Notes under the pieces: generated by a model
What the model saw: only the letters and a program-made list of their open reading frames with translations
Told to the model about the DNA's origin: nothing
The model's database searches: none
Shown: positions 411 through 51,293 of the stretch, in pieces
Numbering within the stretch: position 1 is the first letter of the stretch
Layout of the letters: every line of letters begins with the position of its first letter
Translations under genes and position numbers: made by a program
DNA from: Lytechinus pictus
Lineage: Eukaryota
DNA length: 64,000 nucleotides
Assembly (NCBI RefSeq): GCF_037042905.1
Contig: NC_087248.1
Span: 6,572,001-6,636,000, forward strand
Reading direction: 5' to 3'

Positions 411-426
411 TGGGGTAGCGAGAATT

Positions 427-5275: not shown

Positions 5276-5596
5276 ATGTTTGGACGTAGGAAGTCGCGAC
5301 GCTCCCGCTCCCTTGAGCGGAAGCCCCGGCGAAAGTCGGTCCAAGTACGGTTCGCCGATGCCGAGAACGTTCCATCCAAGATCGAAATCTCTCGCCCAAT
5401 GCAAGTTCGTAGGTTGAAATCGTATTCGGGAGATGGATCGGACTTCATGGAAATACATCCAATCAGAGATGGATTAGAAGACAATGATAGCGTCTTCTCT
5501 ACAGAACCCTGTAAGAAAGAGAATGATAAACTTGGGAAGGAGAAAAAGGATAGTAAGGTACAGAGGAATAATGAAAGGAGGAGAAGCAGCAACACG
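5276..5596 (+). CDS. ATG-initiated coding exon (107 codons), probable alternative first coding exon of the RhoGEF-like gene
   Basis: gcaacATG context; MFGRRKSRRSRSLERKPRRKSVQVRFADAENVPSKIEISRPMQ...RRSSNT; GC/CpG-rich relative to flanks; ends at ACG|GTGAGT in phase 0, compatible with the 51171 acceptor. Linkage to the downstream exons is inferred. Confidence 0.75.
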
Positions 5597-8500
5597 GTGA
5601 GTTGTTAAATTCAATCCCAATTGAGCTTTCACTCGTGCTGATCACTGATCAGTCAAAATGCATGCAGTAAAACGCTGTTAAAATATTTTTGTTATGAATC
5701 ACTGTTTAGTATCTAAACCTTACAGTAGATGTTTAAATGGTTTATACAAGTGTAAAAATCTTGTACAACAAAGTTGAGTATTTGATATTTAATTCTCAAT
5801 TAATTGAGCATGGTTGTTTTTACTGTTAAACAACTTCTGTAAGGTAACTTCATAACAGTATTGTATACAATATGGCATTGGGCTTGACATAAAAGTTCAA
5901 ATTATCATATGATTATAACTTTTTTGGGGGGAGGGGTGCTGTGAATGTTAAATCTGCTTTGATCAGTTCAAGGAGATATCACTATCTCCTTGATCAGTTT
6001 CTGCAAAAAATGATGCAAGTATTATTGAAATGATAATAATCACTTAGAGATGGGTTAATCAAATAAATTGTGTTTATTTATTACTATTTCTGGAAGTGCA
6101 GGTTCAGTAGTTTTCCTTTGAGCATTATCTGGAAGCCAGAAGCAATGTTTTCATCATTCGATTGTCTGTCAATATCCGGGATGTTATCCTGTATAGTATA
6201 CACAGATGTACCCTTTTCATAACATGAAACTAATTACTTCTAGTTTTTATTGCTTCATCAAACAAAGCCTTAACTTGTATAGTTGTAAATAATGTTTATT
6301 CAGTATTGGATCAGAAGTCGTAGCCTCTTAGGGGAAAATCAATTTGTTTAGTTGTGAGAAGGGGGCTGTGTTCTCATGTTCTTTTGTGACTTGAAGAAGC
6401 CTTTGGACAAGTTTTGAGCAGATTCTGTTTTACAACTGCCAGTCTAATATTGCTCTGATTGAAAAATACTAATTCATCTTTCATATGTAGTAAAAGCAAA
6501 ACTTTTCTGGAGATACATGTAAGCCTGTAATAATAGATGAAATTAGATTTTTCTTGGACCAGGTGCGATGGGTGGGTGAAGGCATACATTTTTTTTTTCA
6601 TTGACTTCAAAATATGGCAATGCAAAGATTCAGATTTATTTCTCCTGTCCAGTGCAGAAGTCAGATAGACCTTGTTTGGTCCATAATATAATATAATGTA
6701 TATAATAATGTACGCCTAATCCCATTTCTAAAACTCTTTGAACTAATGTAACTAATAATGATTAAAACTTTCATAAAGCACAGCTATAAATCCTATAATC
6801 ATCTAGTATAAATAATATATAATCTACTGTGTTTACCATGGATGTGGGCCGTAAATAGTATATGGTTTACTTTAGATTAGAAATTTTGAACTTTTTTTCA
6901 AATTTAGTTCCTCATTGCTGGTGATATTTCAACATATCCTTTGTTTTGTATACATTTTGTGGTTGAATATTTCTCGTAATATAACCAATCACTATTCTGC
7001 GGTAGTGCGTGCAGTATCCTGAAATGTGCGAATACAGGATTTCCCTTCTCTCTGAATATGATACGATGGAGGAAAAGGGAAATAAGGAAAATGTAATTTT
7101 CACTGTGGCTTGGGAGGAAACTTGATAGTTGCCTTGTTAGAGAATGATTCCGTTCGGAGGATTACCTCGCTTTGATCCCATTCCAAACTGGCTCCTATGC
7201 TAAGCCTGCATTCTCTTAAAAACAGTCAAAGGAATTCATAAAAATATAAGGAAAAAAAAGGAAAATATGTATTTGTTGCCAAAATGGCATACAGACATAT
7301 TTGATACAGATTTATCTTTTCTTCGGCTCTGAATTATGAATAAAGCCTTAATTTTGCTTATTTCATTTTTACCATTGTTATCGAAAAGTTGAGTGTAGAA
7401 TATGTTCTCTTCTGTATATCTGCGGACAAAAATCAAATAATTTTACAATAGCTAACCAAGCATTTCTGAGTCATTCTCCGAATTTGTTTTTTAATCTTTT
7501 CTTGTGTATCATCCCAATTTGATAAGATAAGGAGTCTTCTGAATTGACATTTGCTGAATTTTAAATTCAATTGAACTATTTGAGGCCTCCATGCTGTCTG
7601 TATATTGAGATACAGAAAAAGGTAAATTAGTTGCCAAGTTGTGAATCACTTCGGTCTATTTATAAAACATAACAGTAAGATTTTATATTTCTGGCTGATG
7701 TTTGCTCCCTTTGCAATAAGAATCAAGTTTGGTTGCTCAGACATAATTTAAGCCTCAAAATCTCAATAAATTATTAAGTGGTGAAAAAATACAAAAAAAG
7801 GCATAATACTGGACTATGCCTACAATTAGAATAATTTCAGTTCCTATTTTAGAATTTTATTCTATCAAATTATCTTTGGAAACATATTTTTTTTAAGCAT
7901 TTCTTGTTCACATTTTTGAAAGAATTTTTTAAACGAAAGTTGAGGTAAAATCCTAAAATGTAGGCTGATACATGAAAATTACTGATGAAAATTTGATTTG
8001 AAAAACATGATTCTGTGGTAAAAAATAATGAAGGTTGGTGTCGGTCTACCTGTGGGGTAGGTGTACCTTTACTGTCTTGGCTATGGGAACAGTTGTTAAC
8101 AGGTGTGAATAGTAAACATAGGGAGTGTCAAAGTCTGTCTGCTTCATTACCCCTTCCTTCCCCTATCCTTCCCCTCTCCTTCCCCCCATCATCACCCCTT
8201 CTTGGCTTGTCTGACAGGGGGTGTTCCCATTATTCAAAATGAAAATTGTCCCTGTTCATCATTCTTGGGAAGTATAGGCCTACTGTTACAAGATTCTCTT
8301 CTTGAAAAAAGTTATTTCTATTTTTCAATTCTTGATGGAAATAATGTAATAAGAATAAATGGTTATTCTGAACAAAGAAATCTCATATCCTTTTTAGCTA
8401 GAGATGATATTATATTTGTTATATATTCTTGTTAGCATTCTTGGATAATGATGAAAAGGAAAACAGACTTTTAGCAAAGTGCTGATTTACTTTGACTTGT

Positions 8501-10115
8501 GAGAAGACATCCTTTGTTTACTACTAATATTAAGTTTTCTCACTTTCAGGTAATGGATACACCCTCTTGACCAATGAGAAATTCTTGGGGGTAGGGGGTA
8601 AGCTTCAACAGACTTGACACAAACCTGCAGGCACAAGATTTAGCCAAAGCCTTTCAAAGTAGGTCCTACTTCTGTCAAAAATATGGCCTGCTTAGTAGAC
8701 TTGAAAATTGATTTTTTTTTACCCTCACTTTATCCAGTTATTGATAGTTATTAGATTTATAAGAATTAAGATGTGGTCTTTCTTGTTGATTCAGTCCACT
8801 CAATACATTTTTTCCTGGAAAAGGGGGTGTTAAATGCCCCGACCACTTACAAGTAGTGCTGCCCTCACACTTGTCTTGTTGTCTAACTCCGCAGAAAATC
8901 TGTATAATTTTAATCAACTTGCATCTTTGGTTACATTTGTCCTGGAGCCATTTCCTAGTATGTGAAACACAACTTATGAATTCAATCATTCCCGCAGAAG
9001 TTTCAAGGATGACAAATACCTGTCTGGAAGATAAAGACTATTTGCTTCTCGAATATTAATTTACATTTTTTAATGTAAATCCTTGCAGTGGAGTAACAGC
9101 TGTTTGCTTCCATGCCTAATGGTCCCAGACAGGGGTTGTAAATTAAAAAGTCTGGAGGTATGGTTATGTTACAATGCTGATTCCTATGAGTAATAATGGC
9201 CTTCCATTGCACATGCCCAGATTGTGGAGGTGTTCGCACTTTTATTAAACAATGTTCAACATAACAATTGCCATGATGAATGAGATTTAGATTAAGTGTG
9301 AATTCGTTTATGCATGCATGGCATCATACTTAATGATAAACCAAGAATCATAATAAATTTGCGTGAAATCATTTACTAAAAGTTTATGTGGTTTATCACT
9401 TGGCTGATAAGGAAGACCTGGAAACAAAATAAAACAGAAAATAAAATCATAGGTCTAAAGGTTTGGTATTTTCCCCTATGTGTACCTAATATTTTCAAGC
9501 ATTATAACTACTAATGGTATTGCTATAAACATGCAGGCTGAATTCAGTCTGCAAGGCTGTATATAGGCTAGTCTTATGAAATGCATTTTGGAATTTAAAT
9601 TTAAAAACTTATAAATCACATATTCACTAGACTTTATGTCATTATTTGAAACCAAAATAAATGGTCTACTGGCATTGGCCCAATTTTAAGCATGATATTG
9701 GGGAGTGAGGACCCAGGGGAAAACAAAAACTGTGTTGGTTAAAATGTTTATTACGGTTTTTGTTTTGAAAGTACCCAATTTGTAAGTAAAAATAGAATAC
9801 ATGTATATATATATATGACTTCAGGAAGTTGAAGCTTTTGGGCCAGTTTCTAGACAGAGCCTCTCCAGTGCTGACTGAATTCCAGCCACTCCACAATAAA
9901 TCCTCTTCATTACAAACATGGGAACTTTGACCATGGCTTTTAGGATTTCTCATACTTTGCCAGATTGAAATTCTGATGGAGATGATAGCCGTGGGGATTA
10001 CATCATACACAGGACATGTGACATCTGCCCAACCCTTCTCCTGTCTGTAAATCACCCTTCAAAGAATTCCATATCCTCAAGGAATAGAATCTGATATCTT
10101 TGTGCATGCATGGGA

Positions 10116-13384: not shown

Positions 13385-13790
13385 AAAGATACTCAACCTT
13401 AATGACCAATTCAACTGCTTAATCAATAATATTCTTTATGAGATCAAGTAATTCAAGTATGGCCTACTGGTATGTTTTTTTACCATTGATGATAATCAAT
13501 GACACTACATTTAGTACTTCAACCCCGTGATGTCAAATGATGTCACTTTCTTCTCAAGTCCACTATGTTTACAATACATTCAAATTTACAACTAGCTATT
13601 AATATTTGTATACTAACAAGTTGACTGTAGCCGATCACTCCAAACTAAAGTCACATACACGTAGGCTCACTACAGGGATCACCAAGTTCTAGTAGCCAGG
13701 TCCAAGTCTTACTAGGTTACCCTTTTCTGGCCCCCTAAAACAGACAGTATTCTGTAATGTGTAAAGCCTTATCATTAATTTACAGCACAA

Positions 13791-14270
13791 TAGGTGGTTT
13801 CAGACCGCCTCGCAGTTCGCCAGTTCCAGGTATTCTCTGATCGGGAAATTTACCCTGATCAGAAAATACCAGGTATTTTGGCGGTGTGAAAGCAAACTAC
13901 GCGTAATATCCCCGAAAGAAAATACCCGATAAATAGTAGGTACTTGGCGAAATTACGAGAACTTTCGCAGGGATTTTTCCAAGGTCGTGGGTATTTTGGC
14001 GGTCTGAAAGCAAATTACGGGAACTTTTAGCCCAGCGTGTCGTTGGGTGCGGCGCCGTGCATGGGTTGCTGCTGGGCTAGTGATTTTGAATTTCGCGCCT
14101 TGCTGCTTATCAGACCATACTGCGCATGCTCGTAACTTCAGGAACTTATCCCGAAGGGTATGTTTCAGGGCGGTGTGAATGCAGGAATAATTAATGGGTA
14201 TTTTTCAGCCTAAAAAAGTTCTCGTAATTTAACGGGGATTCTTGTGATCGAGGCGGTTTGAAACCACCTA
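13791..14270 (+). mobile_element. Young MITE, copy 1 (uninterrupted); coordinates include flanking TA
   Basis: TAGGTGGTTTCAGACCGCCTCG ... CGAGGCGGTTTGAAACCACCTA. TSD is TA (fits both copies) or AAT. Near-identical to 52201-53280 minus its insert. Confidence 0.92.
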
Positions 14271-14373
14271 ATGACCCATAATACCTAGCAAGAATGCTGT
14301 AATGAGTCCTCACACATCAGCTTAGGACCTCAAGAAGTAGCCATAAATGTCTGTTGGCTTGTAGACCTACTAA

Positions 14374-14836
14374 GAGGCTGTTCTCACTACGTTCCTAAAA
14401 CTAGTTTACTGGGAACCGGTTCAGAAAGCCAGTTTGGAAGATCGCTTTGCTAGCGTTCTCACTTGATCACACGAAAGTGGTTTTCAAAATCACTTCACGT
14501 ATAGCGCTCTTGTTGCTATGGAAACGCTCTCAGTGGGGAGACACGTTTCGCGCGAAATTCGAAACCGCAGCATAGGCATTCTACACCTGTCGTGTGGAGT
14601 AGCGCGCTCAAAATGTGCGAAGATCGCTTCCCGAAGAACGGTTGTGTCCTCACTTACGCTAAAACCACTTTTCCGATGCGAAGCGATCTTGAAAACTACA
14701 TCGCGAGGTGGTCTCCCAAACTGGTTTGGAAGAGCGCTTCCAAGAGCGCTTCGACCGTTCTCACTTAGCGTTAAACTAGTTTCCACTAAACTAGTTTCCA
14801 CTAAACTAGTTTAAGGAACTGAGTGAGAACAGCCTC
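14374..14836 (+). mobile_element. Harbinger-like MITE family A, copy 1
   Basis: Perfect TIR GAGGCTGTTCTCACT; TSD TAA/TAA; subterminal AAACTAGTTT palindromes; homologous to 19184-19647 and 55773-56188. Confidence 0.92.
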
Positions 14837-15873
14837 TAATAGGCAGTAGCATTGGTCAAGTCAAGTTGATTGCCAATTAGCAGGATGCCAAGATAACGAA
14901 CAGGGGAAGTTCAGCTGTAATTAGACAACTAAACAAATTTCCTTTCTCCTGCACAGACTGTCAAGTTAGCTGGAAGTCTAAATTTAATCCACCCCCTACA
15001 TCCTTAGGCCTATATTTTTTCCTTGTTTATAAATACTGTTAGTCGTTACTCATCTTCTTTGATAGGCAAGATTATGAGAGTGTACCCCAGATCACAGTCA
15101 AGTTCTCAAATTTTTTTTCTTCAGAAAATCCAATCAAATTCAGTAGGCCTGATGTTTTGCAACATAGAAATCCCAATGTGAAGCACCTTCTTTCAACAAC
15201 ATTCCTGCTATAAAAGCATTTTTGGCTTCGAAATTTCCCATTTTAATGTATATTCTCCATAAAGCAACAGGGAATAGGGGGAAATCTGCTGCAAAAGACA
15301 CCGACCAGAATTCTTGCTCAGAGCATGCTCAGAGATAGTGCACAGAATTAATGAAGTTAACTAAATGGAGTAGCATTATAATTTCTTTATATCTAGCATA
15401 GGCCTACTATATTTCTTTTAAAAAGGCAGTGGAGTTAGTATATAGCAATTTTTTTTTTTGGGGGGGGTAAATATCTTGTGCACATTGTAAAAAATATTCA
15501 TGTTCCGCATTTTGGTGAGGGAAGGGGGTAAAAATTCATACACTTGCGATGTAAAAAAACACCTGTTTGGTATTTTGTATTCTAATGTTGTATAGCCATG
15601 GGTGTACGCCTTTATCTGTTATAGCAGTATTTAAATATCTTGTATCATAACTGCTTGAAGATTAACCCCCAACATCATAACTGTGTGAAGTAGGATGAGT
15701 GTATCCATGAGTCAGGTTTGTGTCTGATCTCTTTGGATTTACCTAGGTGTTATGTTGTTAATGCTTCACCCATGAATCATTCTATGTTCACCTTTGAATT
15801 TGACATGTTAAAGAGACATTCACATTCAACGATAAATCAAAAGATTGTTGTTGTTTTTGTTAGTGCCCTTTGG

Positions 15874-15975: not shown

Positions 15976-17591
15976 AGTACATTGCTCTATTACTTTGCAT
16001 CTAAAGCATTATTCGGAGAAACAAATCTTAGATCTTAATCTTAATTCTTAGATCTTAATCTTTAATCTTATTAGGAGTAGCCAAGAAGTTGAGCCAACTT
16101 TCATTTTGAATACAGTTGTGCCCGTGTCATTCCATCTTATGTTTATACGCATGTAGTGCATATGATATTAGTCCTGTTATTTAAAAAAAATCTTTTCATG
16201 AAAAAAAAGAACCATTAGACATTCTTGATGTAAAATAATATTTTACCTTAAACCCAAACAGCAGTGTTGACGTGTTGGATTGGGAGGGGGGGGTGAATGA
16301 AATGATATACTGAGCAGTGCTTCCTAGCAACCAATGCCTAGATTTATAACTCATGAAAATATGAAATCCCTGGAAGCACTGAACTTCAAATCTGAAAATA
16401 TGACAAGGTGAACATTTTTTTATAGAGGATTAGTTCTACTTGATAGAACAGGAGGCCTATGTATTCATAGGTAACTATATTCTGGTTGAAAAAAGGAGAA
16501 GATGGGGCTACATTTTGTTTTTATATAGATTTATTGTGCAATAACATGTGTACATGTTACTTGGTCAAATTTTTCCATAATCAGAATGAGGGGCTACAAA
16601 GGTGGGATTAATGTTCAAATCTGTCTATTTTGATGATTAACTCTCATAATCGGTCTAGTGATAGACTCACCCAAATCAGATCAAACCACAATCGCCATGG
16701 AAATGGGTGATAATCTCACCTTTTGAAACAGTTTCCCTGTAATTAGCTTCATGGGGTGTGAAATTAAAATCTATTTTCACTAATCGGTTTATGATTTTGT
16801 TAGATTGCAGATCTGATTAGTATGGACATATATTGAATTAGGGCATGTCATCTGGACCTATTTTTTGCAATATTTTTTTGTCAGGACAAGAGAGGATATT
16901 TGATTCCCCTCATTACACACTGTCTTTTTTTCCAGTTGGTTACCATGGTTATTTACAACAATAAATAAATATGTCTACCTGTTAAATGACTTGGTTAACC
17001 GATAATACGTTTCAAATGGTTCTTCATCATAAAGCATTAGTAAATATTATAGGACGAAATGAAGACTAAATTTTGTTTAATTTAGTCTTTATTTTTTGCA
17101 TGTAGATTTAGAAATTATATTGCATTGGGAGTAACCTATAGGTGTTATACATATAAAACTGCTTTGAATCTAATACCCCTTTCATAAACCCAATAAAACA
17201 TATCCTCCAATTAGCCGCCTAAGAGTAATGCGGATAATTCAATAAAAATTGCGTTCACAAACTCCATAAATTATTTTTACGAGCGCCCGTCCTGAAAAAG
17301 GCGGATAATCGTCATGACAACTGGACACGCCCCCTCCAATGCGGTTGTGTTGGAAAAGGGTGACCTTGTGACCGCACCATGGCAATTATCCGCATTATTT
17401 GGAAATACGTTCATAAACTCAAAATCTTGTCCCGATGCCGCTATTATGCGGATAATAGCAGCATCAGAATAATGCGGATAACTCTTGTCCTCCTCTGATT
17501 TTACGACCAAATTATGCTGCTATTAGCCGCATAATTGTGTTTTATTTGTCTCACCTGCATAGCAGAGTGAGACTATAGGCGCCGCTTTTCC

Positions 17592-17646
17592 GACGGCGGC
17601 GGCGACGGCGGCGGCGGCGGCGGCGACGGCGGCGGCGGCGGCGGCG
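17592..17646 (+). repeat. (GGC/GAC)n trinucleotide microsatellite inside the Helentron-like element
   Basis: gacggcggcggcgacggcggcggc... directly visible. Confidence 0.95.
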
Positions 17647-17647
17647 T

Positions 17648-18455
17648 CAACACCAAATCTTAACCTGAGGTTAAGTTTTTGAAATGACAGCATAACTTAG
17701 AAAGTATATGGACCTAGTTCATGAAACTTGGCCATAAGGTTAATCAAGTATTACTGAACATCCTGCCTGAGTTTCATGTCACATGACCAAGGTCAAAGGT
17801 CATTTAGGGTCAATGAACTTAGACCATGTTGGGGGAATCAACATCAAAATCTTAACCTAAGGTTAAGTTTTTGAAATGTCATCATAACTTAGAAAATATA
17901 TGGACCTAGTTCATGAAACTAATACATAAGGTTAATCAAGTATCAATGAACATCCTGCTTGAGTTTCACATCACATGACCAAGGTCAAAGGTCATTTAGG
18001 GTCAATGAACTTTGGCCGAATTGGGGGTATCTGTTGAATTACCATCATAACTTTGAAAGTTTATGGATCTGATTCATGAAACTTCGACATAATAGTAATC
18101 AAGTATTACTGAACATCCTGTGCAAGTTTCAGGTCACATGATCAAGGTCAAAGGTCATTTAGGGTCAATGAACTTTGGCCAAATTGGGGTATTTGTTGAA
18201 TTACAGCCATAAATTTGAAAGTGTGTTGGTCTAGTTCATAAAACTTGGACATAATAGTAATCAAGTATCACTGAACATCCTGTGCAAGTTTCAGGTCACA
18301 TGATCAAGGTCAAAGGTCATGTTAAGGTCAAAGAACTTTGGCCACGTTGGGGGTATTTGTTGAATTGCCATCATATCTCTATAAGTGTATTGGTCTAGTT
18401 CATAAAACGTGGAAATAAGAGTAACCAAGTATCACTGAACATCTTGTGCGAGTTA
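17648..18455 (+). repeat. Tandem array, about 4.7 units of 162-192 bp
   Basis: Anchor ggtcaaaggtca at 17791, 17983, 18146, 18308 (periods 192, 163, 162). Confidence 0.9.
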
Positions 18456-19183
18456 TAGTAGTTTTCAAAATCAGCACTGCTGCTATATTGAATCGCGTGA
18501 TGCAGGTGAGACGGCCAGAGGCATTCCACTTGTTGGGTTTATGAAAGGGGTATTAAGCTTTCAGTTTAAAACTTATGACTGATATTTATTTTCATAGCCT
18601 GATGAAGTTTTTGTTCCTTTTCTAGGAGCATGCTTTCAGTGCATGCATCTCACCCCGAGAAATGATAAGTGAGTTTGGGTTCAGACCAGTGTCAAATGAA
18701 ATTATCATTCCCTTGGTCTCTTCACAATCCAAATTTATGTCATATCTGTCTGTTTTATGTCTCAAATTGATATATTTCATTCAGTCTTATTGCTCTGCAG
18801 AGACAGTGAAAATAATGTAGATGTATTTCATTCAAACCGTGCATGAGGGAGTGTGGTTTTAAAATGTTTGATGTCACAAATTCATGAGGGGTCATTTATT
18901 GGTCTTCGGGAATACAGTAATGCACTTTTCAGTATAGGCCTATGTCTGAGAAAGAAATGAATATTTCAGATGGAGATGAAGTTATCCTATCATCCTGTCA
19001 TCTATAGGTTGCAATAGGCTGCAATATAAGAGACATACATACTCTTTATCAAACCAATTTTTTGGGGGGAGGAGGTCATTGCAAACAAATGTAGGCTGAA
19101 TAGTCAGTTTGCATATTATTATGATCCCTTTAGAGCTTTAAGAAAATACCAATGGTTTAAAAATCCTGTCAATACATGAGTAT

Positions 19184-19647
19184 GAGGCCGTTCGCATTAC
19201 GCTTTCTAAAACTAGTTTACTGGAAACCGATTCAGGAAACCACTTTGGAAGATCGCTTTGCTAGCGTTCCCACTTGATCACACGAAAGTGGTTTTCAAAA
19301 TCACTTCACGTAAAGCGCTCTTATTGCTATGGAAACGCTCTCAGTGGGGTGACACGTTTCGCGCGAAATTCGAAACCGCAGCATAGGCATTCTACACCTG
19401 TCGTGTGGAGTAGCGCGCTCAAAATGTGCGAAGATCGCTTCCCGAAGAACGGTTGTGTCCTCACTTACGCTAAAACCAGTTTAACGAGGCAAAGCGATCT
19501 TGAAAACTACATCGCGAGGTGGTTTTCCAAACTGGTTTGGAAGATCGCTTCCAAGACCGCTTTGACCGTTCTCACTACGTGTTAAACTAGTTTCCACTAA
19601 ACTAGTTTCCAGTAAACTAGTTTTAGGAACGTAGTGAGAACAGCCTC
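19184..19647 (+). mobile_element. Harbinger-like MITE family A, copy 2
   Basis: GAGGCCGTTCGCATTACG ... CGTAGTGAGAACAGCCTC; flanks TAT/TAA; collinear with 14374-14836. Confidence 0.92.
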
Positions 19648-21300
19648 TAAAGTATTATAAGGAGGCATAAGTAAGTCAGTTGGCAGTACAGTAGGCCCTG
19701 GCTCTTCATGATTTGAACATATAGTTTTGTCTTTCGTTACACAGGACATCTCTATAAGTTTGCTGAACATGCATGTCCATCTTCAGTAGAGAGTAATCTA
19801 GTGTTGATTGGATGATCCAGATTTCAGACCACAATTCTCATTAATCATTTTAACCTATTTCTTCACCAGGGTAAAGGATGGCATTTTTCATAAAAATGCT
19901 TGTCCATTAGAATAGATCATGATTCTAACATTGTAAACCCCCCCCCCCCCCGTTGAATTAATTTGTATTCAATAAATCAAATAAGCGTTAAATGATTTTA
20001 TTTCATAAAAACGTCACTCTCTTTCATTAAAGAGACCTGTATTGATATATTGACGATGGTCACTTGACCCAGATTAGTGACTCCTGGGACTCAAACAAAG
20101 CTTATCAATCATCGGAGAACATTTTCTACGATTGATTGCATTGACTTCAATATACAATCAATCGTAAAAATCAATCTTACAATTAATTGCTAACCTTTGT
20201 GATACAGGACCTTGATCTCATGCTACAAATAAATAGACAGTTTTTCAGGTCTAAAATAAGCTCAGTTGCATACCGTGAAAAGCATTCATTGGGTTAATTT
20301 GCCAGTTGAATACTTATTGTTGCGCACTTCAATCAATAATCAGAACCAGGTTTGGAAGGTCGCTGAACTATCAGGCTCAAATTAAGATAAATAATGACCA
20401 GTATCTCCCTTGTCTTTTAATCAATGGCGTATCTTTCCCACCCTCAATCCGCTGTGGTGTTTTCGATTTACCAAGAGATATACGAGTAAAAGCGTTGCTT
20501 GTTTTGGTGTTTTATTTGTGAGTCACTCTCCGCCCTTCTTAAAAACAAATATTAAACAAGGATACATTTGTTTCTTCTTTTGTTTGTGAGAGTGAGATAA
20601 GAAAGTGTGATGTTCTATTTTTGTGAGAGCCTTTTGTTAAAATGGGTAGTGACATTTACTATTGCAATTAGCAGAAAGGAATGCGATGAGAAAATAAATG
20701 GATCCTAGTCTATTCCAAGTAGTAAGGGCCTATTTTCATATCCACCAGATGAAAAATATTTGTAAATTTTTGGAATTTTTTTCTTTTATTTTGTAGGATC
20801 ATCCCCACCTGAAGTGAACCATGAAAAGTCATCAACATTTCTTATGATTCATATTTGTTTCAATCTTGCACTAAAAACTCTAAAACAGCTGTGTCACTTT
20901 AAAATCATGAAAGATCAATCAAATTTTCTTGGAAAGCGTACCTTGCAATCGTTTCTTTCGGAAGCACAAAATTCCTCTAATGAAAATATAAAAAACAACA
21001 TACCAGCACATATTTTGCAAATAAGTGCAAAATAAATTTTGGCAATGGATAAGATAGTGTTTTTCAAGTCCTACAATGTCATTGAAGAAGAAGATGGCAT
21101 TTTCTTCTCAAAATACTTCTGACCGAATATACGAAAAGTTGACCAAAATTTTAACACACTACATCAATTACTAAGGTTTCACTGTGAAATTAGTTTCACT
21201 TTTACTAAGGGGATTTGATGTCGTTCACCTCTCAGAAGAAAATGCCAGGTCCCCCTATTGTTGTCCCCAAATGGCTTAATTGCTTCTTTTGTTTTCCTTT

Positions 21301-21853: not shown

Positions 21854-21952
21854 TTCTGTGAAATTTATCAATTACAATCTTAGGTACAAAAATAGGCCAA
21901 GATCTTCTACGAGAATAGATCATCCATGATGGTTCTGGTAAGTTGAGTTTAA

Positions 21953-38417: not shown

Positions 38418-38478
38418 TTAGTTGTCAAAATTGGATTTGTCTCAAGAAATATTTCTTGAGTCATTGACTGATGACAAT

Positions 38479-38649: not shown

Positions 38650-40761
38650 AATGAAAATACTTATAGTTATTCTAACAGTATTTTTCAAAATACAATTTCA
38701 TGTCAGTAGATCAAATTGGATACATTCCTTTAATGTCTTTTTGTATAAGAAAAACCCTGTTTCATATGCCTTAACTAAGGTATGTATTTAAAATGCAACA
38801 GGATTTTTTTTTTTTTGCTTTGAAAAAGAGCACCTTTATTGTTATTTGCCAACAAGACAGAACATAGACCGTCCACCGGGGTCCATGTACAGACTTACAG
38901 GTAGGCCCATTCTTTGACATAACTTATGTTTTTGTGATGTTTGACGTCATTGCTGCTTCAGCCATGTGGAGCAGTCTTCATTGCATCTGACCAGTCTTCA
39001 AAGAACCTGACAATTTGTCCTATTGTCTCTGGACTGTTACACAGAGGTTTTAAAAATACCCTCTCAGAAAACTTGCTTTAGAAGAGGAGATTATCTTCTA
39101 GCCATTGACTTGGAATTGATCAAGTCCAATGGAGCATAAGCCATCAAGGTATAGTTTGGTGAATTTATTTTGTAGCCTTTGGTTGTAACTGTAAGAAGAA
39201 GCTGTGGACCTGGAACTGCACCAGCCACAACTTTGGGGTGATCAATCCTACCAGAATATCACATGGAGGATTGGTGCGTAACAAGGCCCTGTAACATTGA
39301 GACAGAAACAAACTAATCATACAGGTACATACTTTTAACTGTAAGTATATAATAGCCCATATACAATTGATTACAATAATCAATTGCAAATATTTTCATT
39401 AATGCAACAAGGTCTTGGTATAGGCCTAAAAGAAATGAGAACATATCTTGAACATTTCTGGTTATAGATAGAATAAACCTTTTCATTTAAGCCATCCTGG
39501 AGAAATTTCTTATACGGTGAATACTGCAAGTGCAATTAAAGGAGAAAACAATTTTCTATAGGCCTACAGGTATGCATATCATTTCATTTTTCCATGACAG
39601 GGTAAAGTGCTAATGGTATGCTAATGTATTTTCAGAGAGTCTACAGCAACAGGTCCATGCAACATCTGTAGGATCCCATGTCGACACCATAATGCTACAT
39701 GTACATTTATGGTTGGCCAACAAGACATAAAACAAAGCTGGTATCTTGTAGAATTCCCTTTTTATGGCATTCTTTATCTAGCATAACATGTGATTGTATT
39801 GTCACGTGTGTACCTTCCCGTGCAAGTGCAATAGAAACAAATAATTTGGCTCTCTAGTTCATTAAGTAAAATTTTCTGTAAATTATTGGTAATAGTAGAC
39901 AATTATCCCGTTTTATTAGTGATAAATTGTATGATTTGATGGTACCAGACAACTACCAGTTCCACAGTCCAGCATTGTGCATTTAAACTAAATGAATTCA
40001 CACTATTGAGGGTGCACTTCACATTAGCATTGGAAAAAAATTATCTGAATTGCTGTGCAAGCAAACAGAAGAGTTCCTGTGATGCTGCTATTGATTTTTA
40101 AAAGATGTTCTTATTAATTGCTCTGAATGAATGAGTAATTGGTCATGTATGTTGATGGTCATTTTTACAATCCCCCATTCAACCATACTGACCCTTATCC
40201 ATTCTCATGGTCAATTCTTAGAACTTGTTCAATGTTATATCTTTGTCTATTCAGTTGGATTGTAATTTGTGACAAATTTGATTTACCACAGCTGTACTGA
40301 ATCAATCATTTGTATACAAGAGAACTAAATTCTGAAATTCATTTTCCACAATACATGACAGTTGTGAATTTCAACAATCAAGTAAATTTTAAGAGGTGAC
40401 AAATTTTGATATATCGGCCTTTTTCAAAGCACTGGCTTCATCATTTCTGTATGAGAGCCTTATCATTTATAGAATGTCCATCTGATTTGAAGGCAATTCC
40501 CTCATGTAATCAAGTCAATTGCTGTTGGTTGAGAATCTGAAATGAAGGGTCACTCCAGTATAGCGTCAAAGTATGATACATATACTGCATCCATCTTGCT
40601 CATCCAGCTGTCAACTATCCCATCACTTTTTAATTTTTTCTTCAAGTCCGTAGAACGGGTGGTGTGAAGGCACACCCATTCATAAAAACTTTCCCCTTTG
40701 TCGACTAGGTCACTCATAATACTGCATGAATCTTGTGGTTTGGTATTAAAATGGTTAGTGG

Positions 40762-40803
40762 ATGAGCTGTATTGTGGCACCATTCATGTGCTGCCTCCTT
40801 GAG
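40762..40803 (+). CDS. Candidate short alternative first exon, MSCIVAPFMCCLLE
   Basis: First ATG after an in-frame stop, 14 codons, GAG|GTAAGA donor in phase 0. Confidence 0.3.
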
Positions 40804-43800
40804 GTAAGAGTCCATGGCTGGCTATAGGACTTGGAGGATTAAAATTTGTCTACCCCAGAACACTTTCCTTTCTGTCAAGCCAAGGGTTCTATTTCCGCAT
40901 CCACTGGATGAACCGGTACAAAGGATGGGGAAGAAGATTATGGAGGAAAGCTCTTTGATGAAGAATCTAATCCATCCAGCTCTCTGATGAAGAACAGTTC
41001 TAATCCATCCTTCTTAAAGGCTTCTTGTAGTTTGTCTTTGATCTTGAACACCTTAATTAAGAATGCAGGTGGCAGCAAGTAGGAAATTCATTTAGGGGTA
41101 GGAATTATAAAATCATGTTTGCCAATTCTTATTTGGTTCAGGATCCGAAAGTGATCAGAATGTTATGTCTGAAACGGTGATATGTCAGGAGAAATGGGTT
41201 CATAAATAATTATTGTAATAACTTACGTGAACCTTAAGGTTTGATGTCCTTAAACCAAAGTATTTGAAAATTTATTGATTTTTTTTCACGATAGGCACAT
41301 ATCAGGGGAGGAGATAAACAAAGTCTTAAGGGCTATTTTTAGCATAGGCCTAGAATTTTACTCCAGTAAAATTGCTTCCCTGAAGAAAGATGAACTTTAT
41401 TTGGTATTGGTTAGATCAAAGTATGTGACAAGGCAGTTGGCACATTTTATGATAAATATTAATTTGATTTATGACCATACCATGTTAAAAAATGAGAGGG
41501 AAATCCAACAGGTTTTTAATTTGATAGCTTGTACTTCCTTATTGCTTTCAGTAATGAGATTGATGTTATTTTCCTTGACCTCATTCAGTTTATTTATCCC
41601 TGAATCTAGACCACATCAGTCACCCTGAATTGACCCTAAGAATGTTGCTCCTGTCACCTCTATCCATTCCACTTCACTCACCTTCTTTCTCTCAAATTAA
41701 TCTGCCTCAATAATTTCCTTTAAATCAATCACGTTTCGCTGGCCTCCAAAGCCACTCACCTTTTCCAGAATTCCTGAACCCTCAACTTTGTTGGATACAT
41801 GGGAATGTGTACTTAACACTTCATGAAAAGGCCATTGCTACGATTGATCTGTGAGTGATTTTACTATGAATTGGATTGGTGATCATGAAAAAGTACAGAG
41901 TGGTGTGACGTGAATCTGAGAAAAACAAGCAAGAGGCAGAGCTATTTGTCGTCTATTACTCGTATTCGTCTTCAGCCATGTGTGGTGTGATGAAAGGTAA
42001 AAATTGATTTCAGAATTAGCCGCACCGGAGCGCTTAATGCCTTATCAGCATTCCATGGGACAATAGGTGCTTGTTTATCACAGAAATATCATAAATTGCG
42101 CTCATTGAGCTCGAATCCTTGCACAACATCCAGCCCTTCCAGCCGATTACCATCGCACCATTTAGTGCCAATCTTCAATAGGGTTAACAGCCCGACACCC
42201 AGTGGTCTCATAAGCAATTAAACCAATTTGTTGAGATCTTCCATTCATTTTGTTATCATATACAATAGTAACGAGTTGATGGTGATTAGCATGCCTTGAT
42301 ATGATATTTGAGATGACGAGATGGTATTTGCACCCCTTTTTCTGGTGGAGGGGGGCTTGTATTGGGATCAAAACGTACCATTGTTGGCCTTTTAGCCCGA
42401 GGAAACTACCCCTAACTATATCATTAAAAGCAATCGATACAACGGACACAAGAAAAACAGCAGGCAAAAATAACCCTCCTTCTGCGGCCATTGAGCTAAT
42501 TGACAGATTTGTTTTCTGTAAAGCAGTCTACAACTGACATTTATTGATAAAACCACAAATTAGTTAACAATACAGTGCATATTTTTTCCTCTCAAAAATT
42601 GTGTTATTGACAAAAAAAATTGAACAGCAACATTAATCATACTGTTGAAGAGAAAAGTGTGAAAGAGTACAATTTTGAAACCAGGAAGTATACATTTTTA
42701 AACTTTTCACCAGTACTGTCATCAAATAATTTTTTATTTCATATATATGAAAGTGTGTTGACATTCTATTTGTAGAAAAGAAAAGAATTGGAAGATGAAA
42801 AATAACACCCTTCCATTTCAAAACTGATTCTATCTATTTGAGTTTTAAGAATATTATCAATTCATTAGTTATAACTTATTATGTTAAAAGTCTCGCACAA
42901 ATTTGAATTCCTGAGGTTTTGTCGTCAAGATAAGTCCTACATTAAATTTTGAATTGTCAGAAAGTGAAAGTTGGCCTTGTCATTCAGTATTGCCTTAGTG
43001 AAATGAAAGTGTTATTTCAAAAGTCATATGAATGCATTGCTGCATAGGAAGTATTTGAGGAAAATAAAGCTGTCTATTGGTATGCCTTATAAGTAGCATA
43101 ATGATAAGAAAGTTAGATGCTTCGAGCCCTGGCCTTCGTGACAACAATGCATTGAACAATGTACTTATTTCATCTGGGTTGGTACAAATGAAAGTGAAAG
43201 TTTTTGCACAATTTTTAATACAATCATACTTGTATGGGCAGGATCTCAAGATGATGAAGAGAAGCCAGTGATATTGTGTGCATAGCATAGTTGACTCATG
43301 TTATTCAAGCGTTCGTTTATACCATGAGCTACTTGAATGCCTGAGAGATTGGGATCTGTATGGCACTGTGAAGAACTCTTGGAAGACAAGATTGTAGAAT
43401 CGATTCAATATCTCGGCATGAAGTCCATAGCCTTTTCCCTCCCAGTTTGCACTGTCTTAGGTAATTAATTAACATCACATTCATGAATGTCCTTTAAAAT
43501 GGTGGCTCAACAGGGTTACACAAGTAAAGTTAAGATCCTCCATTTTGCCTCTCAGACAGGGGTCATAGGCTAATCCCCTGCTATAAACTCCTATTATTGA
43601 AAGGGGTGGATTGTGGCCCAATCAAGAAATGGGGGTTGTTGGGTCATTGGTTGTACAACTCCAGTGAGCTTTATGGTCCGTACACAGCTTGATGAATGAA
43701 TGCCTTGAGGCAATCTAATCATCCAGTCTTCTGGCAGAGGATAGTGTACCTGAGGCTTTGCAGTGGGCCATGCATGCTATACCATACCTCTCTCCTTGAT

Positions 43801-44158
43801 AGTAGGAGCATGGATGGAGTTCATGTGAGGAGGGCTGCTCAAGGCCCGGCCTGCAGAATGGAATAGACGGATGTTGCAGTAAATAATGTTCGGTACTGGA
43901 GGAGCTAATTTGATAACTGGTTCAATATTTCTTTCATTTTGATAATTCGTTGTTTGGATCTTCAAGATGTTATAAAAACTTTGAAATTACATTTAGTACA
44001 TGTCCAGTATCCCTGATGGTCTGACTAAATGGAATTAAGGAAAGACAATGGATTATATCTTATTTATGAGCTCTTGAAGCGCAGCTGGACAGGCATGATG
44101 GAAAGGTCAAGCTAGGTGAATGTTCACGGCAAATTGAATATTGTAGCACTGCTCTAGA

Positions 44159-44179
44159 ATGAATCCTGTGACACGGAAG
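44159..44179 (+). CDS. Candidate short alternative first exon, MNPVTRK
   Basis: ATG...AAG|GTAAGT (consensus donor), phase 0. Confidence 0.25.
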
Positions 44180-47100
44180 GTAAGTTTAGAAAGACATCTA
44201 TGTTCTTATACGATATTCAATTTGTTTCATTGACCTTGCGATCCAGCCACTACTTTCTAATCAACTTGATACCCTTTGGTAAGGATTCAACTGCAGAAGA
44301 ACTTTGTGATTTTTATCAGGAGAGGACACCAACAAGTCAAAATAAAGTTGCTTTTACCAGGTTTGTTATCGCATTGTTATGACATGGTATTTCCTTTGTC
44401 TGATAAATGTGAGAACCTGCGCTTTTATTATCATATCTCTTTGTTGATGGATATATAATCCTGTGTTTTGATCTTTGGGTCTTTGCTGATGTCTGCTTAC
44501 ATCAGGCGATCACATCACAGCCTCAAAGTACTACTATTTGAATTTACTGAAGTGAAGATAGTGTCTGGAACAAACTCCATTGCTTTATAACTATTTGATG
44601 GTAAGTGGAAGAAAGAGGCAACGGAAAGTAACTCTTGTGAGTATGATTCAAGCTGCTACAGTACATGGTAAATCTTTATTTTGAAATATATGTATTGTTT
44701 GTGAGAGGAACAAGTGTGATCATTATAATTGTGTTTTGTGTTGGGATAAATTTATCTGGCAACAACCTACACCATAGGCCTATCAGATGAGATCAGATGA
44801 AGATAATCGACATGATATAATGTGACAGTGTTTTTTTTATTAGATCATGAAATGAGAGTAAGCTCCTATGTTGCAAACTAAACTGCAATTATGGCAAGTT
44901 ATCCATTCCCAGTGAGCCCCCCCCCCCCCCCCGAAAAAAAAATCGTGTGAGAAGTAACCTCCAATCTCAGAGTAGGCTAAGTGCTTGTGAAGGATAGAAT
45001 CTTTGTAGTATGATACAGGATAAGGGGCTCAAATCCTCACGATAGGTCTTGTAAAAGGAAAGAAACCTTCAAAGTTTCAGCTCAACACATGAAGAATAGA
45101 TGGTTAGGCTCTTTGTAAATAAATAGTCCAACCTATTAGTTTTCTTGCGCCGCCGTTTTGGTGTGGTTTCCTCGGGGCTATCTCCACCCCTAAAGTTACT
45201 CCAGGAGTCCAGGGTCAGTAAATTGGGCCGTTAGATAAGCATGTGAATCGATATCACATGTATGATCATCAAGATAGGGTTATTGTGTAGTGCAGTTTGC
45301 CTAATTAGGCTTATATGACATGAATGTAGAATGTAAAAGGTGAATATCAACAATATCTATCTCCTTGGAATGCATCTATAGTATATGGTCTAAATGGAAT
45401 ATGTGTCTTTTTTTCTTCTATAATCATGCTCTGTTGACTATACTTTGAACATCTAAACATGTTCTAGGGTAATATTATTTTGTTAGAGTAAACTACACTT
45501 CAGTATTGAGCATTTAAATGAAGATAAAAGAAGAGGCTCATTCAAAATCTCATCAGAGAATTGTCTTTTTGCTGGTTGGCCCTTGTCAGCTTCAGACTCT
45601 TGTACTAGACATTTTATATTGACCATTAGAACAGAGACGGCCATTTATTTCATCCTCTTTTATACTTGTTCATGGTGAAAAGCAATTATTGGATTTCCTT
45701 GAGTGAGTTCCTTATAAACTTACTATCCTGATAGGTAATTTATAGAAGGTGAAAAGTTTATCAAGTTACTTTAGAATCATCCACTTGTTCAACCCCCCCC
45801 CCTTCTTTCTGTTAATGTAAGCCTTTCTTCACTGTGCCTACTGTTATTAAATGCCTTTTCCATCTACGGTCATTTTTTTTATTTCATGAAGTACCATGAC
45901 TACATGTCCATGATCATTGTGTTACCTGTTTCAATCATTTACATTTTTTAATCCCCAGGAACATTTAATTAAATTCAGGTGCCTGAATTTAAAAAAATGA
46001 AATGCATACTGTGCCATGTAAAGTAATTTAAATCTCATAGTTCTTGGACACAATTTAGTATAGACCTAGCGATATTACCAAGTACTGTAACTTTGTTTCT
46101 TGTTTCTATCAACTTAGATATACTTAGCGAACATGTCACAATTGTTCAGGCCTTTTACATTGAAATCATCATGAAAATTTGATTTTGGACCTGATTTGAA
46201 TATACCCGGAAGTGGGATAGAACTCAACATATTCACACAAAACTGAAATGGTGACAGTACCCTTTTCCCCAATCTATTTTTGTTTCTTGATTGGGTGGGT
46301 CACACATGCAGGGTCGAAGCGGACAAAAGCTGCACCAGAATAGAGGATGAGAATACATTGGACCAACAATGTACCAATCGCAGGAACAGCCGAAGGCACT
46401 GTTGAATTGACTCCTTCGTCAATCAGAAACCTTTTCTCATTCGAGTCATACATCTAGAGGCCATATCTTGCCATCGTTTAGAAAATTATCTCCAGAGATG
46501 AATCATTAATCATGGGATAATGTGTGCTGGTGTGAAGGGTTGTCTTGTTTGATCCATGGGTGTTGATTGTACTCAAGCTAGGTTCATTAGGGCTATGCAT
46601 GTATGTTGACTTGTATGGTGGTGTATTCACTCATGTGACGTCAGAAAGGGAATTGATGAATTGTGTCCAGGAGGAGAATGTGAGATGAGAAGAAAGCGAT
46701 GGGCTAAAGTTAGAGGGAGAAAGGGAATTGTTAATCAGTGATTGTAGACATAGATACTGTAGAGAGGGAGAGAGGAGGGGTCGATGACATACACATTAAC
46801 ATGAGTGAAGAATGGAGATGTTCATAAAATTAAAAAGAAAGTGAAAATGTAGGCAAAAGTAAAAAGATAGGCAAAGCATGGGCAAAGGCAACTCTTTGTA
46901 TAAAATGAGAGACAAGTAATCATGTCAGGCCTATGGTCCCGGGTCTATATTTAACTGTAAGTTTAATCTTATGGGGACTACAAGCTTACAAATTGTCAAT
47001 AATATTGTCTCTTGTTGCAAGCTTTCCTTATCCAGTCAGTTTTTTTTTTTTTTTTGTACATGAAAACTTTACAGAAGCACACATTTTCCCCCTGTAAATC

Positions 47101-49021
47101 AAAATGGGGGCTTCCAGTAATCCAGTTACATGTGAGCCTGCTGGATTAGTTGAATAATAATAATCCTCTACTTTAATTGAATGAATGGATCAAGCCCCTT
47201 TATATCAGGGACCTACCACAGTTTGTCAGTACTGCCCATTAGGTGGAGAATCAATGGATGTATTATCCCGGCATAAAATGAGTTAATCTCCATGATTATA
47301 TTGTGGATCTAAAAATACAACTTTGATGTCCATTGTATATAATGTTGATAAATGAATTGCCATCCAGGTTTCATTACTTTTAATCCACTTGACAATCCAT
47401 CCCCCTGTAGTCAGTCCTGGTTGAATTGGACATTTTTGGAAGTATTTAGGATGATTAAAAAAATAAACATTTCATCTTCGGAGGGTTCCTGCCTAGCCTG
47501 AAGACTAGTCAGGAATCTCTATAGAAGCAAATATATATGTAGATGAATTTTTTTGTTTATAGCTGCAGATTGTGGTTCTTTTAGGCAATCGATATTGCAT
47601 AGTGTTTTGATAATAAAGGATAATGTTCTCAAAGAAAGAAATCAAATAAAAGGATAAAATCATGGAAATCCATTACTGATGCTCCTAGAAAATCTGGATT
47701 GAAAATTATAATGCTTTGGAAACAGATTTTAATCTTGATTTATGTATTACACTGATTCAGTTATATCCTCATGACACATTTTATTGTGTTTCTACTATCC
47801 TTGAATGCCTTCAATGGAAATATATACTTTTGATAAATAGCAACCAAGGTTTCCACCAGTACCTGACGATAATTATTGAAGAGTTATATCAATAGTCAAG
47901 TTCAGAGGTTAATATTGTGGTCTGGAATTCCTTCACTCCACTTTGCACTGAAGCTGATCTCTTGGCTTGGTTTTGCGGCCAAGCTGATCCCCCATAACAC
48001 CCCCTCTGTTATGGCCCATGGGGCATAGTCCGTATCAGCGGTCTTTCACAATTCTGCATCTTTACACCGCTATGCGCTCTCTCACCAATTCAAACGTGGT
48101 TTCACTGTTCATGCTCAGTTGGTGGTTAACTCTGGGAGTGCACTGATGTGATAAGCATCAGTTGGTACATAGCAGCAAACACTATGCTAGTATCGCAGCA
48201 TTCGCTTCACCAGCATGCACTTACCAATCGTCCACTGAAGCTCTGACTTTACAACAGACTAGTATTTGTTTAGTGGAGGACTTGTGTCAATGGAAAGCAG
48301 TTTTTTCTTCCTTTTCTTGGAGTGCTATTTGCTGAAACGATAACCCAAAGCTTACCATTCTTGTCGGAGTATTTGCTCTGACCAAGTTGGTAGTTTTTAT
48401 AAAAGGAAAGAAGACTTCCACTAACGGTCCAGCATAATAAGGTGGTCTAATTATAGCGGTCAGTCGGCCGTGATGAGTGGTCAAGAGTGGATAACTTCCT
48501 TGAGGGTCTTCCCAAGTTACAGCTAATTCTACTGAGTGAAATGCAACCTACACAGAGACATGCATGCCTGAAGATTCACTCATTCAGCCATTAATCTCAG
48601 CTCTTGTGAAAGGTTCTTTCATTCCTTCAAGACTCTTTCATTTCTTCAAGAAATCAGGAACTATTTTCGCTTTTATTTGGCATTTGCATTCTTCAAGACA
48701 GCACTGAATCACATTTGCATTTCTTTCTGACGTTGCAAAAGGGAGTCAAAACATATTGCAATAGACTGTAAATTTGACTTAAAAGCTACCTGCCTGATTG
48801 TTTTTCGTCAGTTTGTTTGCATTCAACTCAAGCTGAAGGAGGAGGGATTGAAGGATTTATGTATTGATCACAAGACATATTAGTATCTAAAGGATTCTTT
48901 CTAACCAGTTCACTCAAAAGACTGCCTCAAAAAGACCGACGGCTATCTGCAAGGTGACATCTTCACTTCGATCTAACTTTTTTTAACCCTCCAAGGAAGA
49001 GGAAGAAAGTAAGATGCCATA

Positions 49022-49228
49022 ATGGATGCAGACATGCAGATGGAGACCTACGCTCTGGATGTACAAGTGCGTCAGATCCAGGAAGAGCGCACCCGCAGGA
49101 AGGGGGTTCACTGCATGAAAGGGTTAGAAGGTGTGAAGGAGGGTCGTCCAAGCTCTTGGTACCTGTTTAGCGGTCCAGTCGTGACCAAACAAAGACGACA
49201 TTCCGAGGGTTCAAGGCCTAGTGATCAG
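49022..49228 (+). CDS. Probable alternative first coding exon (69 codons)
   Basis: MDADMQMETYALDVQVRQIQEERTRRK...RRHSEGSRPSDQ; GC-rich and protein-like; CAG|GTCTGT donor in phase 0; no obvious acceptor just upstream. Confidence 0.65.
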
Positions 49229-50189
49229 GTCTGTCTTTTCATTAGTTCATTCTTGGCCTCATAATGCCCCAGGCGACGTATTTTTGTGAAGGGGAAGCTA
49301 TATTTGAAAATATCTCTATTCATTTCTTTATGAGGAATGAATGTCGGAACCCATTGAGTTGCAGTCACAGTAGATTTTCATATACAGGACTTGAATAATA
49401 ACGTGTTTGTGGATTTGTGGAATATTTCTCTTCCATTGAAAGCACAATTTCTTTGATGTCATTAAAAAAATATATATTTACTATATACCGATACTTTTTT
49501 CTCTCAATGTATGAATTGAATTCCGGTATTCACTTGATTAAGTCATTGCATATGTTTCAAAGCATTGATATACTCTCAAACAACCTTTGAAGGTTAACCG
49601 AGAATACATCCAAGTTGTTTGGCATATAAATATGTTTAGTGAGTCCTTTCTTATTAATATTTACCAAGACTTGTGTTGATTCTCACAGACCTTGCTACTT
49701 TTTTATTTGCTGAGGAAATCCATTCAAAATCTGACCAGCTTATCCAGATCATTTTGGAAGCTCAACAAGGGCAGCCTATATGGTGTATAAGTGACAGTAA
49801 ACCAGTAATTGCCGGATTTTAGTTTAATTCATATTATTATCAACATGATTACTCTACACACCTCTTTTTTTGCAGTAATTGTGGTGTTTATTATGAATGA
49901 AATTTATTGTTGAATGAAATGTGAGCTGACAAATGATGTCTTGGATTTGAAATGAATACATTCAGTTTTCTATATCTGACTCGACTTTGCCGGACTTGAG
50001 ATGAATATTCTGCGAAAATTGTAACCTCAGTGCATGATTTGATATGATTTTGAATTGATTTGCAGATGTAATCTGTGTATACCATGGTAATGCAAAACTC
50101 TTCAGATGGGTATTCTCCACTAATAGTCCATTCTATTCAATGGATAACAATTTAGTTGAAATAATTTTTATTTCATTGATATTTGTTAA

Positions 50190-50789
50190 AGGACAAGTCT
50201 CCCCCGACAAAAAGTTGATTTGAATAAAAAGAGAAAAATCCAACAATCATAACAATGAAAATTTCATCAAAATCGGATGTAAAATAAGAAAGTTATGACA
50301 TTTTAAAGTTTCACTTAATTTCACACAACAGTTATATGCACATCCTGGCCAGGATGCAAATGAGGGGACTGATGACATCACGCACTCACTATTTCTTTTG
50401 TATTTCATTATCTGAAATATGAAATATTCTGATTTTCTCACCCATGTTTGAAATCAAGCTTTATTCCTCCCTGTACTTGTGGAATTAACATTGTTTAACA
50501 TTATGTAGTTCAGTCAAGTTTTACATTATTGTCAATTCTGTATAAATTGAAATATTGTATAATTCAAACAATAAAAAACAAAAGAAATAGTGAGTGATGG
50601 ACATCATAGACTCTCGCATTTGCATATCACTGAGTTGTGCATATAACTGTTTTGAGAAAAATATGCGAAACTTTAAAATGTCATAACTTTCTTATTTTAC
50701 ATCCGATTTTGATGAAGTTTTCAGTGTTGTGCTTGTTAGATTTTTCTCTACTTATTCAAATCAACATTTTTCTGGGGTGGACTTGACCT
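50190..50789. mobile_element. TTAA-target (Kolobok-like) foldback MITE, 600 bp
   Basis: TTAA on both sides; AGG(A/T)CAAGTC termini; arms complementary for more than 200 bp, including CATCAAAATCGGATGTAAAATAAGAAAGTTATGACATTTTAAAGTTTC. Confidence 0.92.
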
Positions 50790-51170
50790 TTAATCACTGA
50801 TGTGTTTATTTTTCTAGGAATCTTTGCAGAATAAGGAATTTCCTGTATGATTCTCTATATTAGTGGTACATTATTGAATGTTGATTTAATACCAGAGGAA
50901 TTGAAAACCCAACAATTTCAAAACATCTTTGGTGAATGATGCCACAAGGGCTGCATTACACTTATTTTATCAGTTTTAATATTTCAACATTCTCATTTAA
51001 AACATTTGTTTATACATGTATTTGATAGAGGCTTAACTTCATCACCTAATTGGGGATATAGGATCATAAAAGATAAAACTTCTTGACTTTTGATAGAAAA
51101 TTGATAAAAAATGATGTTTTTTCAATATACATTAGTAAACCCATTTTTTTCTTTCTTTTTTTTACTGCAG

Positions 51171-51293
51171 GTACAACGTGTGTCACAGTATGACAAAGTG
51201 TTACATAATCTGCTTGAAGACAGCTCCAAGTCTAGGACCGGACACCCTCGGGACCATGAGAGTCTTCTAGATCCAGAACAAACTGTTAGAGAG
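51171..51293 (+). CDS. Internal exon resembling the C-terminal part (CR3/alpha6) of a Dbl-homology RhoGEF domain
   Basis: Long polypyrimidine tract + CAG acceptor, GAG|GTAGGT donor, 41 codons, phase 0-0. VQRVSQYDKVLHNLLEDS...GHPRDHESL resembles the DH consensus PVQRIxxYxLLLxxLLKxT...HPDxxxL. Confidence 0.8.

Follow-up and report, generated by a model that had tools for sequence, protein, structure and literature searches.

The locus and its annotated product

We analyzed a stretch of 64,000 nucleotides from Lytechinus pictus (NCBI RefSeq assembly GCF_037042905.1, contig NC_087248.1, positions 6,572,001 to 6,636,000 of the forward strand), called the window below; it contains no N and is AT-rich, and coordinates are window positions throughout. 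Within it lies LOC135153863, a gene that NCBI annotates with a product, XP_063954329.1, described as "uncharacterized protein" (192 aa), which was retrieved by a spliced-peptide search. The locus record GCA_037042905.1 CM073229.1:6611022-6639506 is identical to window 39022-64000 with zero mismatches. XP_063954329.1 consists, with every letter matching, of a first exon (1b), two further exons (2 and 3) and a read-through of the exon-3 donor, as follows (a slash marks a splice border).

49022-49228, plus strand: coding part of exon 1b, 69 codons, phase-0 donor CAG/gtctgt; N-terminus of XP_063954329.1
51171-51293, plus strand: exon 2 (the VQR exon), 41 codons, VQRVSQYDKVLHNLL..., resembling conserved region 3 (CR3) and helix alpha5 of a DH domain
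57258-57383, plus strand: exon 3 core, 42 codons, resembling the last DH helix (alpha6); part of XP_063954329.1
57384-57506, plus strand: read-through tail of the last exon, consisting of 40 codons rich in T and in Phe and a TAA stop (57504); C-terminus of XP_063954329.1

The locus is, in our judgement, probably a small gene whose two-exon shared part (51171-51293 and 57258-57383) encodes a conserved helical segment (CR3/alpha5 and alpha6) stemming from the final third of a DH domain, with the RGS-RhoGEF type as the closest relative. The gene itself is already annotated, though unnamed; a DH-tail origin of LOC135153863 is proposed here as likely. A sequence-only reading of the same DNA had instead proposed that between three and seven alternative first exons form an array feeding a constant body of a guanine nucleotide exchange factor (GEF) for Rho. 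The constant part of XP_063954329.1 comprises only 83 residues of DH tail (exons 2 and 3, residues 70-152) and the 40-residue read-through tail, without a PH domain; it is not a GEF body. The longest product recorded by NCBI for LOC135153863 is the 192-aa protein. Rfam and tRNA scans were empty.

Exon 1b is spliced to exon 2

RNA reads from four runs were aligned to window 48950-54949. The joint 49228/GT..AG/51171 was present in four X22 reads and in one 887-nt X1 contig, and it is also present in the NCBI model. The X1 contig extends upstream past 48950, so exon 1b carries at least 72 nt of 5' untranslated region. An in-frame TAA at 49010 shuts the 1b reading frame upstream, and a short upstream open reading frame (uORF) precedes the main start codon.

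49014-49022, plus strand: two-codon uORF ATGCCATAA (ATG CCA TAA); its stop codon shares letters with the main ATG of 1b (TAATG)

This uORF is identical in contig L002 from a related urchin, which keeps the ATG, donor and frame of 1b with indels of 3 and 12 nt (ratio of non-synonymous to synonymous rates, dN/dS, 0.34). Exon 1b serves as the proximal first exon, with its own AUG, a conserved uORF and an upstream stop, spliced in phase 0 to exon 2 and then to exon 3.

Coding constraint on exon 2 and the signals of exon 3

The acceptor of exon 2 has a score of 12.3, the highest in the region, and the exon is transcribed from the plus strand, as seen in the stranded run X19. Its borders are exactly conserved in a related species, with 7 synonymous and 1 non-synonymous changes in the exon (dN/dS 0.03); the comparisons across species lie at dS 0.3-0.5. 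Exons 1a (a distal exon described below) and 1b and the VQR exon are all conserved coding sequence in a related urchin (dN/dS 0.18, 0.34 and 0.03).

A scan for splice signals over 51294-58200 found exon 3 as the sole credible exon, with an internal phase-0 donor (CAG/gttagt) at 57384. We had considered a terminal "exon 4" at 58024-58107 (AATAAA at 58198); it was dropped, as the NCBI product reads through exon 3. Length-limited searches for homologues of the exon 2 and exon 3 open reading frames (ORFs) returned one genomic ORF and nothing more.

Exons 2 and 3 resemble the C-terminal third of a DH domain

When exons 2 and 3 together were compared with 177,635 PDB sequences, the best four matches were all structures of the ARHGEF11 DH-PH unit (1xcg, 3kz1, 3t06 and 5jhg). 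The alignment runs in register with ARHGEF11 DH residues ~167-228 (~62 residues, ~32% identity), and the shared motifs (QR..Y of CR3, REI.K, Q.EN and Q.R) continue up to the DH/PH border. The look-alikes in the ESM Atlas were RhoGEF fragments, both for exon 2 (0.93, 178 shared features) and for exons 2 and 3 together (0.94, 183). Searches of PDB with single exons gave nothing. AF2 predicted helices at residues 75-88 and 104-142, without tertiary packing (pTM 0.25); in this model the helices fall where alpha5 and alpha6 would be. From their sequence, exons 2 and 3 are likely to represent the C-terminal third of a DH domain, although no significant score proves this. The earlier proposal that the shared exons resemble a DH domain starting at CR3 thus agrees with the Atlas look-alikes and with the in-register ARHGEF11 alignment (E 0.46).

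The remaining parts of a GEF were searched for in the window by regular expressions, Smith-Waterman, phmmer, tblastn and splice-signal scans, and no CR1, CR2 or PH piece was found above chance. The queries were a DH consensus and NET1-like and LARG-like sequences, which have limited sensitivity and serve as lead generators only. The hits that came up were at chance level, among them two short motifs on the plus strand at 43479-43605: IHECPLKWWLNR at 43479 resembles the PH start of an RGS-RhoGEF and RLIPCYKLLLL at 43560 resembles CR3, but the two lie adjacent in the wrong order, with E ~1.2-1.6, which is chance level. No PH-like exon was found after the DH tail in 57.4-64 kb. A complete DH domain (~180 residues with CR1, CR2 and CR3) was not found within the window, where only the CR3-alpha6-like stretch was present.

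Lacking CR1, CR2 and a PH domain, the protein should be unable to catalyse nucleotide exchange. Judged by sequence, the products would contain only the DH tail, which upholds the earlier suggestion that they are GEF-dead, and neither N-terminal form should be able to act as an exchange factor. The full-length catalytic isoform that had been imagined alongside them was absent from the window, and window scans revealed no missed exons in the interval that would complete the DH domain. Of the two options offered by the sequence-only reading, that the DH exons lie upstream or that the gene has lost them, the loss fits best.

A probable distal first exon

A second candidate first exon lies far upstream of exon 2.

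5276-5596, plus strand: exon 1a, ATG-led, 107 codons (321 nt), phase-0 donor ACG/gtgagt; probably a distal alternative first exon

Exon 1a encodes a basic, Ser-rich sequence, ends in a strong phase-0 donor and shows no sequence kinship with 1b; BLASTP of 1a against 1b gave no alignment at E<=100, so the two first exons are not paralogues. Its counterparts are ORFs on contigs of two other echinoids (85% and 67% identical), and the comparison with contig L001 gave a dN/dS of 0.18 with a single 6-nt indel. A phmmer search of the whole library with exon 1a returned only two short ORF calls, both from other species.

The RNA runs point to a start other than 1b. In X19, exon 2 was covered by ~31 reads and 1b by zero, so a further 5' end exists. 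In a 749-nt X4 contig, exon 2 is preceded by 340 nt that match neither 1b nor the intron; this upstream part ends in G after a non-A letter, the same as exon 1a. The lengths agree with such an arrangement (340 = 321 + 19; 749 = 19 + 321 + 123 + 126 + 160). The length of the X4 contig therefore fits a 1a-2-3 read-through transcript starting near 5257, which is suggestive but not proof. We infer a joint from 1a to 51171, by which the distal exon would be connected over 45.6 kb to the shared acceptor, giving a 230-aa form; the joint would read GTACAACGTG... directly after 5596. Of the first exons that the sequence-only reading joined to 51171, then, 1b is seen joined in RNA, and the 1a joint is not seen directly.

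Exon 1a might alternatively belong to a different, unrecognised gene, leaving LOC135153863 with only the 1b start and a form with a variant intron end (described below). The joint 5596 to 51171 occurs in no read or contig seen, NCBI lists no 1a isoform, and the required intron spans 45.6 kb. However, no credible partner exon for 1a was found in 5597-49000, X19 expresses exon 2 without 1b, and the third upstream sequence, that of the X4 contig, fits 1a in length and last letters. We regard a separate gene as rather unlikely, though it deserves serious weight, and think it probable that the present annotation lacks a 5' isoform that starts with 1a.

The other proposed first exons

The ATG..GT patterns listed in the sequence-only reading are all present at their positions and in phase 0. 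Apart from 1a and 1b they are the following.

33393-33458, plus strand: proposed first exon, 22 codons, weak donor (score 3.2); unannotated and unsupported
21926-21937, 40762-40803, 44159-44179 and 44598-44600, plus strand: weak candidates, regarded as chance patterns

Patterns of an ATG, an open frame and a strong phase-0 donor number 6 on the plus strand and 4 on the minus strand of the interval, against 4.2 +/- 2.1 in Markov-random sequence. As these counts match the random expectation, the four weak candidates are attributed to chance. The NCBI annotation has no gene spanning 39022-49021, and this annotation-free stretch takes in three of the four. None of the candidate exons lies inside a repeat, as judged by comparison within the window. 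From the array of three to seven first exons there remain one proven (1b) and one probable (1a), the others being at chance level or unsupported.

These results bear on the proposal that three to seven alternative first exons serve a RhoGEF body and produce GEF-dead isoforms beside a full-length GEF with upstream DH exons. Two ATG-led, phase-0 first exons do exist, the joint from 1b to 51171 is proven, the shared exons are DH-like, and the proposal places its DH exons upstream of the window, outside the region searched. Against this, four of its candidates are at chance level, the annotated body stops after exon 3 without PH, no annotated gene runs across 39022-49021, and CR1 and CR2 were not found in 51 kb. 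Reads that could have pointed to an additional exon further upstream agree with how the intron ends in a related species and are read as an allele (see the following section). We consider such an array very unlikely. With one proven and one probable first exon and a tiny body, it shrinks to a DH-tail mini-gene with two promoters.

The 3' end and a variant intron end

The X1 contig passes the exon-3 donor by 29 nt, into a T10 run, and is unbranched, so this donor is little used, at least in that sample. Most RNA then reads through it to the stop at 57504, beside an AAUAAA, and gives the 192-aa protein.

57486-57491, plus strand: AATAAA, with a genomic A12 run downstream of it at 57506-57517; likely a poly(A) site or an internal-priming site

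A second form of RNA was seen at the other end of the shared part. Variant reads carry ...TTTTACTACCG immediately before exon 2, equivalent to 51167 G>A and 51169 A>C, by which the acceptor AG becomes CG. This intron end was found in 14 X22 reads, in 9 X19 reads and in the X1 contig at a depth of 46.8, and the reference intron end was found in zero reads. We considered whether these reads come from an upstream exon (..ACCG, followed in frame by ..LLP/VQR); no site in the window matches the read letters, and the candidate sites at 2566, 4609, 14415, 40912 (LDEP/VQR) and 27371 were examined and dropped. Because no window site matches and the intron of a related species ends in ACTACAG, the variant is most simply read as an intron-end allele. 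It is probably a common allele without AG that is retained in RNA.

The allele also bears on whether the locus is a decaying gene fragment with incidental open frames. Only a domain fragment is left, expression is low, the acceptor of exon 2 seems to be missing from a common allele, and the tail is intron-like. Nevertheless, exon 2 shows 7 synonymous changes to 1 non-synonymous (dN/dS 0.03), and the ATG, the splice sites and the frame (through frame-preserving indels) have been kept across species at dS 0.3-0.5. Decay is highly improbable in our estimation.

The neighbouring RhoGAP gene and other features of the window

An ARHGAP20-like gene lies on the same strand, starting ~7.2 kb downstream of exon 3, at 698 nt past the window end (window-equivalent 64698 onward; L003 25677-28485). 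It encodes 1285 aa with RHG20_PH, RA and RhoGAP domains, and its first exon has 17 codons, MPLAKSRSMPGSLARQW/gtaagt, in phase 0.

Exons 1a or 1b, 2 and 3 could in principle be alternative 5' exons of this gene, giving a protein of the order DH remnant, PH, RA and RhoGAP, with the 192-aa model as an internal-priming artefact. The RhoGAP gene is adjacent and on the same strand, a good phase-0 donor ends exon 3 exactly at the DH/PH boundary, the RhoGAP first exon is also in phase 0, and the tail of the 192-aa protein looks like intron and stops at the genomic A12 run. But the X1 contig is unbranched 29 nt beyond the exon-3 donor, NCBI annotates two separate genes, the AATAAA ~15 nt ahead of the A run suggests a true poly(A) site, and the RhoGAP gene possesses a short N-terminal first exon of its own. 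A transcript that joins the DH tail to PH, RA and RhoGAP could formally exist, but the lack of a branch in the X1 contig and the annotation of two genes speak against it, and we hold this arrangement to be unlikely.

Several other features of the window were recorded.

52201-53281: repeat copy that is missing from one RNA-run contig (joint 52200 to 53282) and is therefore an insertion polymorphism; related copies at 13775-14272 and 26447-27049
50186-50793: repeat whose family, like that of 52201-53281, is very abundant in RNA
17590-17650: (GGC)n microsatellite, the top GC/CpG peak of the window; not an exon
100-430, plus strand: ORF that contains a SAP-like motif, ELKKILTDRGIPCNGK, and is broken by a stop; appears to be repeat-derived or dead coding sequence
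14371-14839, 19181-19650 and 55796-56188: another interspersed repeat in three copies, every one of which contains a long open frame (..CCYGNALSG.TRFARNSKPQHRH..)

Discussion

The reading of LOC135153863 as a DH-tail gene with one proven and one probable first exon has several results to contend with, which we gather here as the points that weigh against it. Pfam, including PF00621, returned nothing at E<=10, whether with exon 2, with exon 3, with the two together or with the full 192 aa, so the profile that the sequence-only reading had put forward as a check finds no match in the exons or the whole protein. The E-value of the ARHGEF11 match in PDB is just 0.46. Exon 3 alone was empty in Pfam, PDB and the ESM Atlas, and the Atlas blank in particular counts against the assignment. 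The direct joint of 1a to exon 2 (5596 to 51171) was absent from every read and contig seen, and NCBI has no 230-aa 1a isoform, though it would be the longest on record if present. The read-through tail is intron-like in sequence, and of the reads that span the acceptor of exon 2, roughly one in three has the variant intron end without AG. Finally, the function proposed below is a best guess.

The closest known relative is the DH domain of ARHGEF11 (PDZ-RhoGEF), with whose last ~62 residues exons 2 and 3 align in register at ~32% identity. In contrast to ARHGEF11, about two thirds of the DH domain (CR1 and CR2) and the PH domain are gone here, and the product has 192 aa rather than >1000. In alternative-promoter genes such as NET1/NET1A, unrelated first coding exons with their own ATGs are spliced to one common acceptor. 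The present locus is similar in that ATG-bearing first exons lead in phase onto one acceptor; unlike in the NET1/NET1A type, this acceptor lies inside a former catalytic domain, and only one of the two joints is proven. The protocadherin and UGT1A clusters have many paralogous first exons on a shared body, whereas at most two first exons, mutually dissimilar, were found here.

Vav3.1 is an N-terminally truncated, GEF-less isoform of VAV3 that exists alongside the full-length GEF and retains SH2/SH3 (PMC6153599). It shares with XP_063954329.1 the character of a 5'-truncated GEF-type product without the region needed for exchange. At the present locus, however, scans of the window turned up no full-length form, and the DH tail has nothing after it.

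What is unusual about LOC135153863 is that a DH fragment alone seems to have survived and that purifying selection still acts strongly on it. The tight conservation of exon 2 would point to a non-catalytic role in binding or as a scaffold, in which the two N-termini would govern location or regulation. A more specific version is speculative and, to our mind, improbable: a stand-alone DH alpha5-alpha6 tail protein with two promoters, maintained in echinoids by strong purifying selection, would act as a non-catalytic regulator of Rho signalling that might, for example, bind a GTPase, a PH domain or the neighbouring RhoGAP, or would occasionally be spliced to the RhoGAP as an ancient GEF-GAP fossil.

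In summary, the analysis does away with the picture of an extensive variable-exon system at this locus and opens no long-standing question. If the DH-tail interpretation is right, part of a catalytic domain has persisted in a small gene that is under constraint and whose two N-termini are interchangeable, and LOC135153863 would be a minor but clean echinoderm case of the retention of a domain remnant together with the use of alternative promoters.

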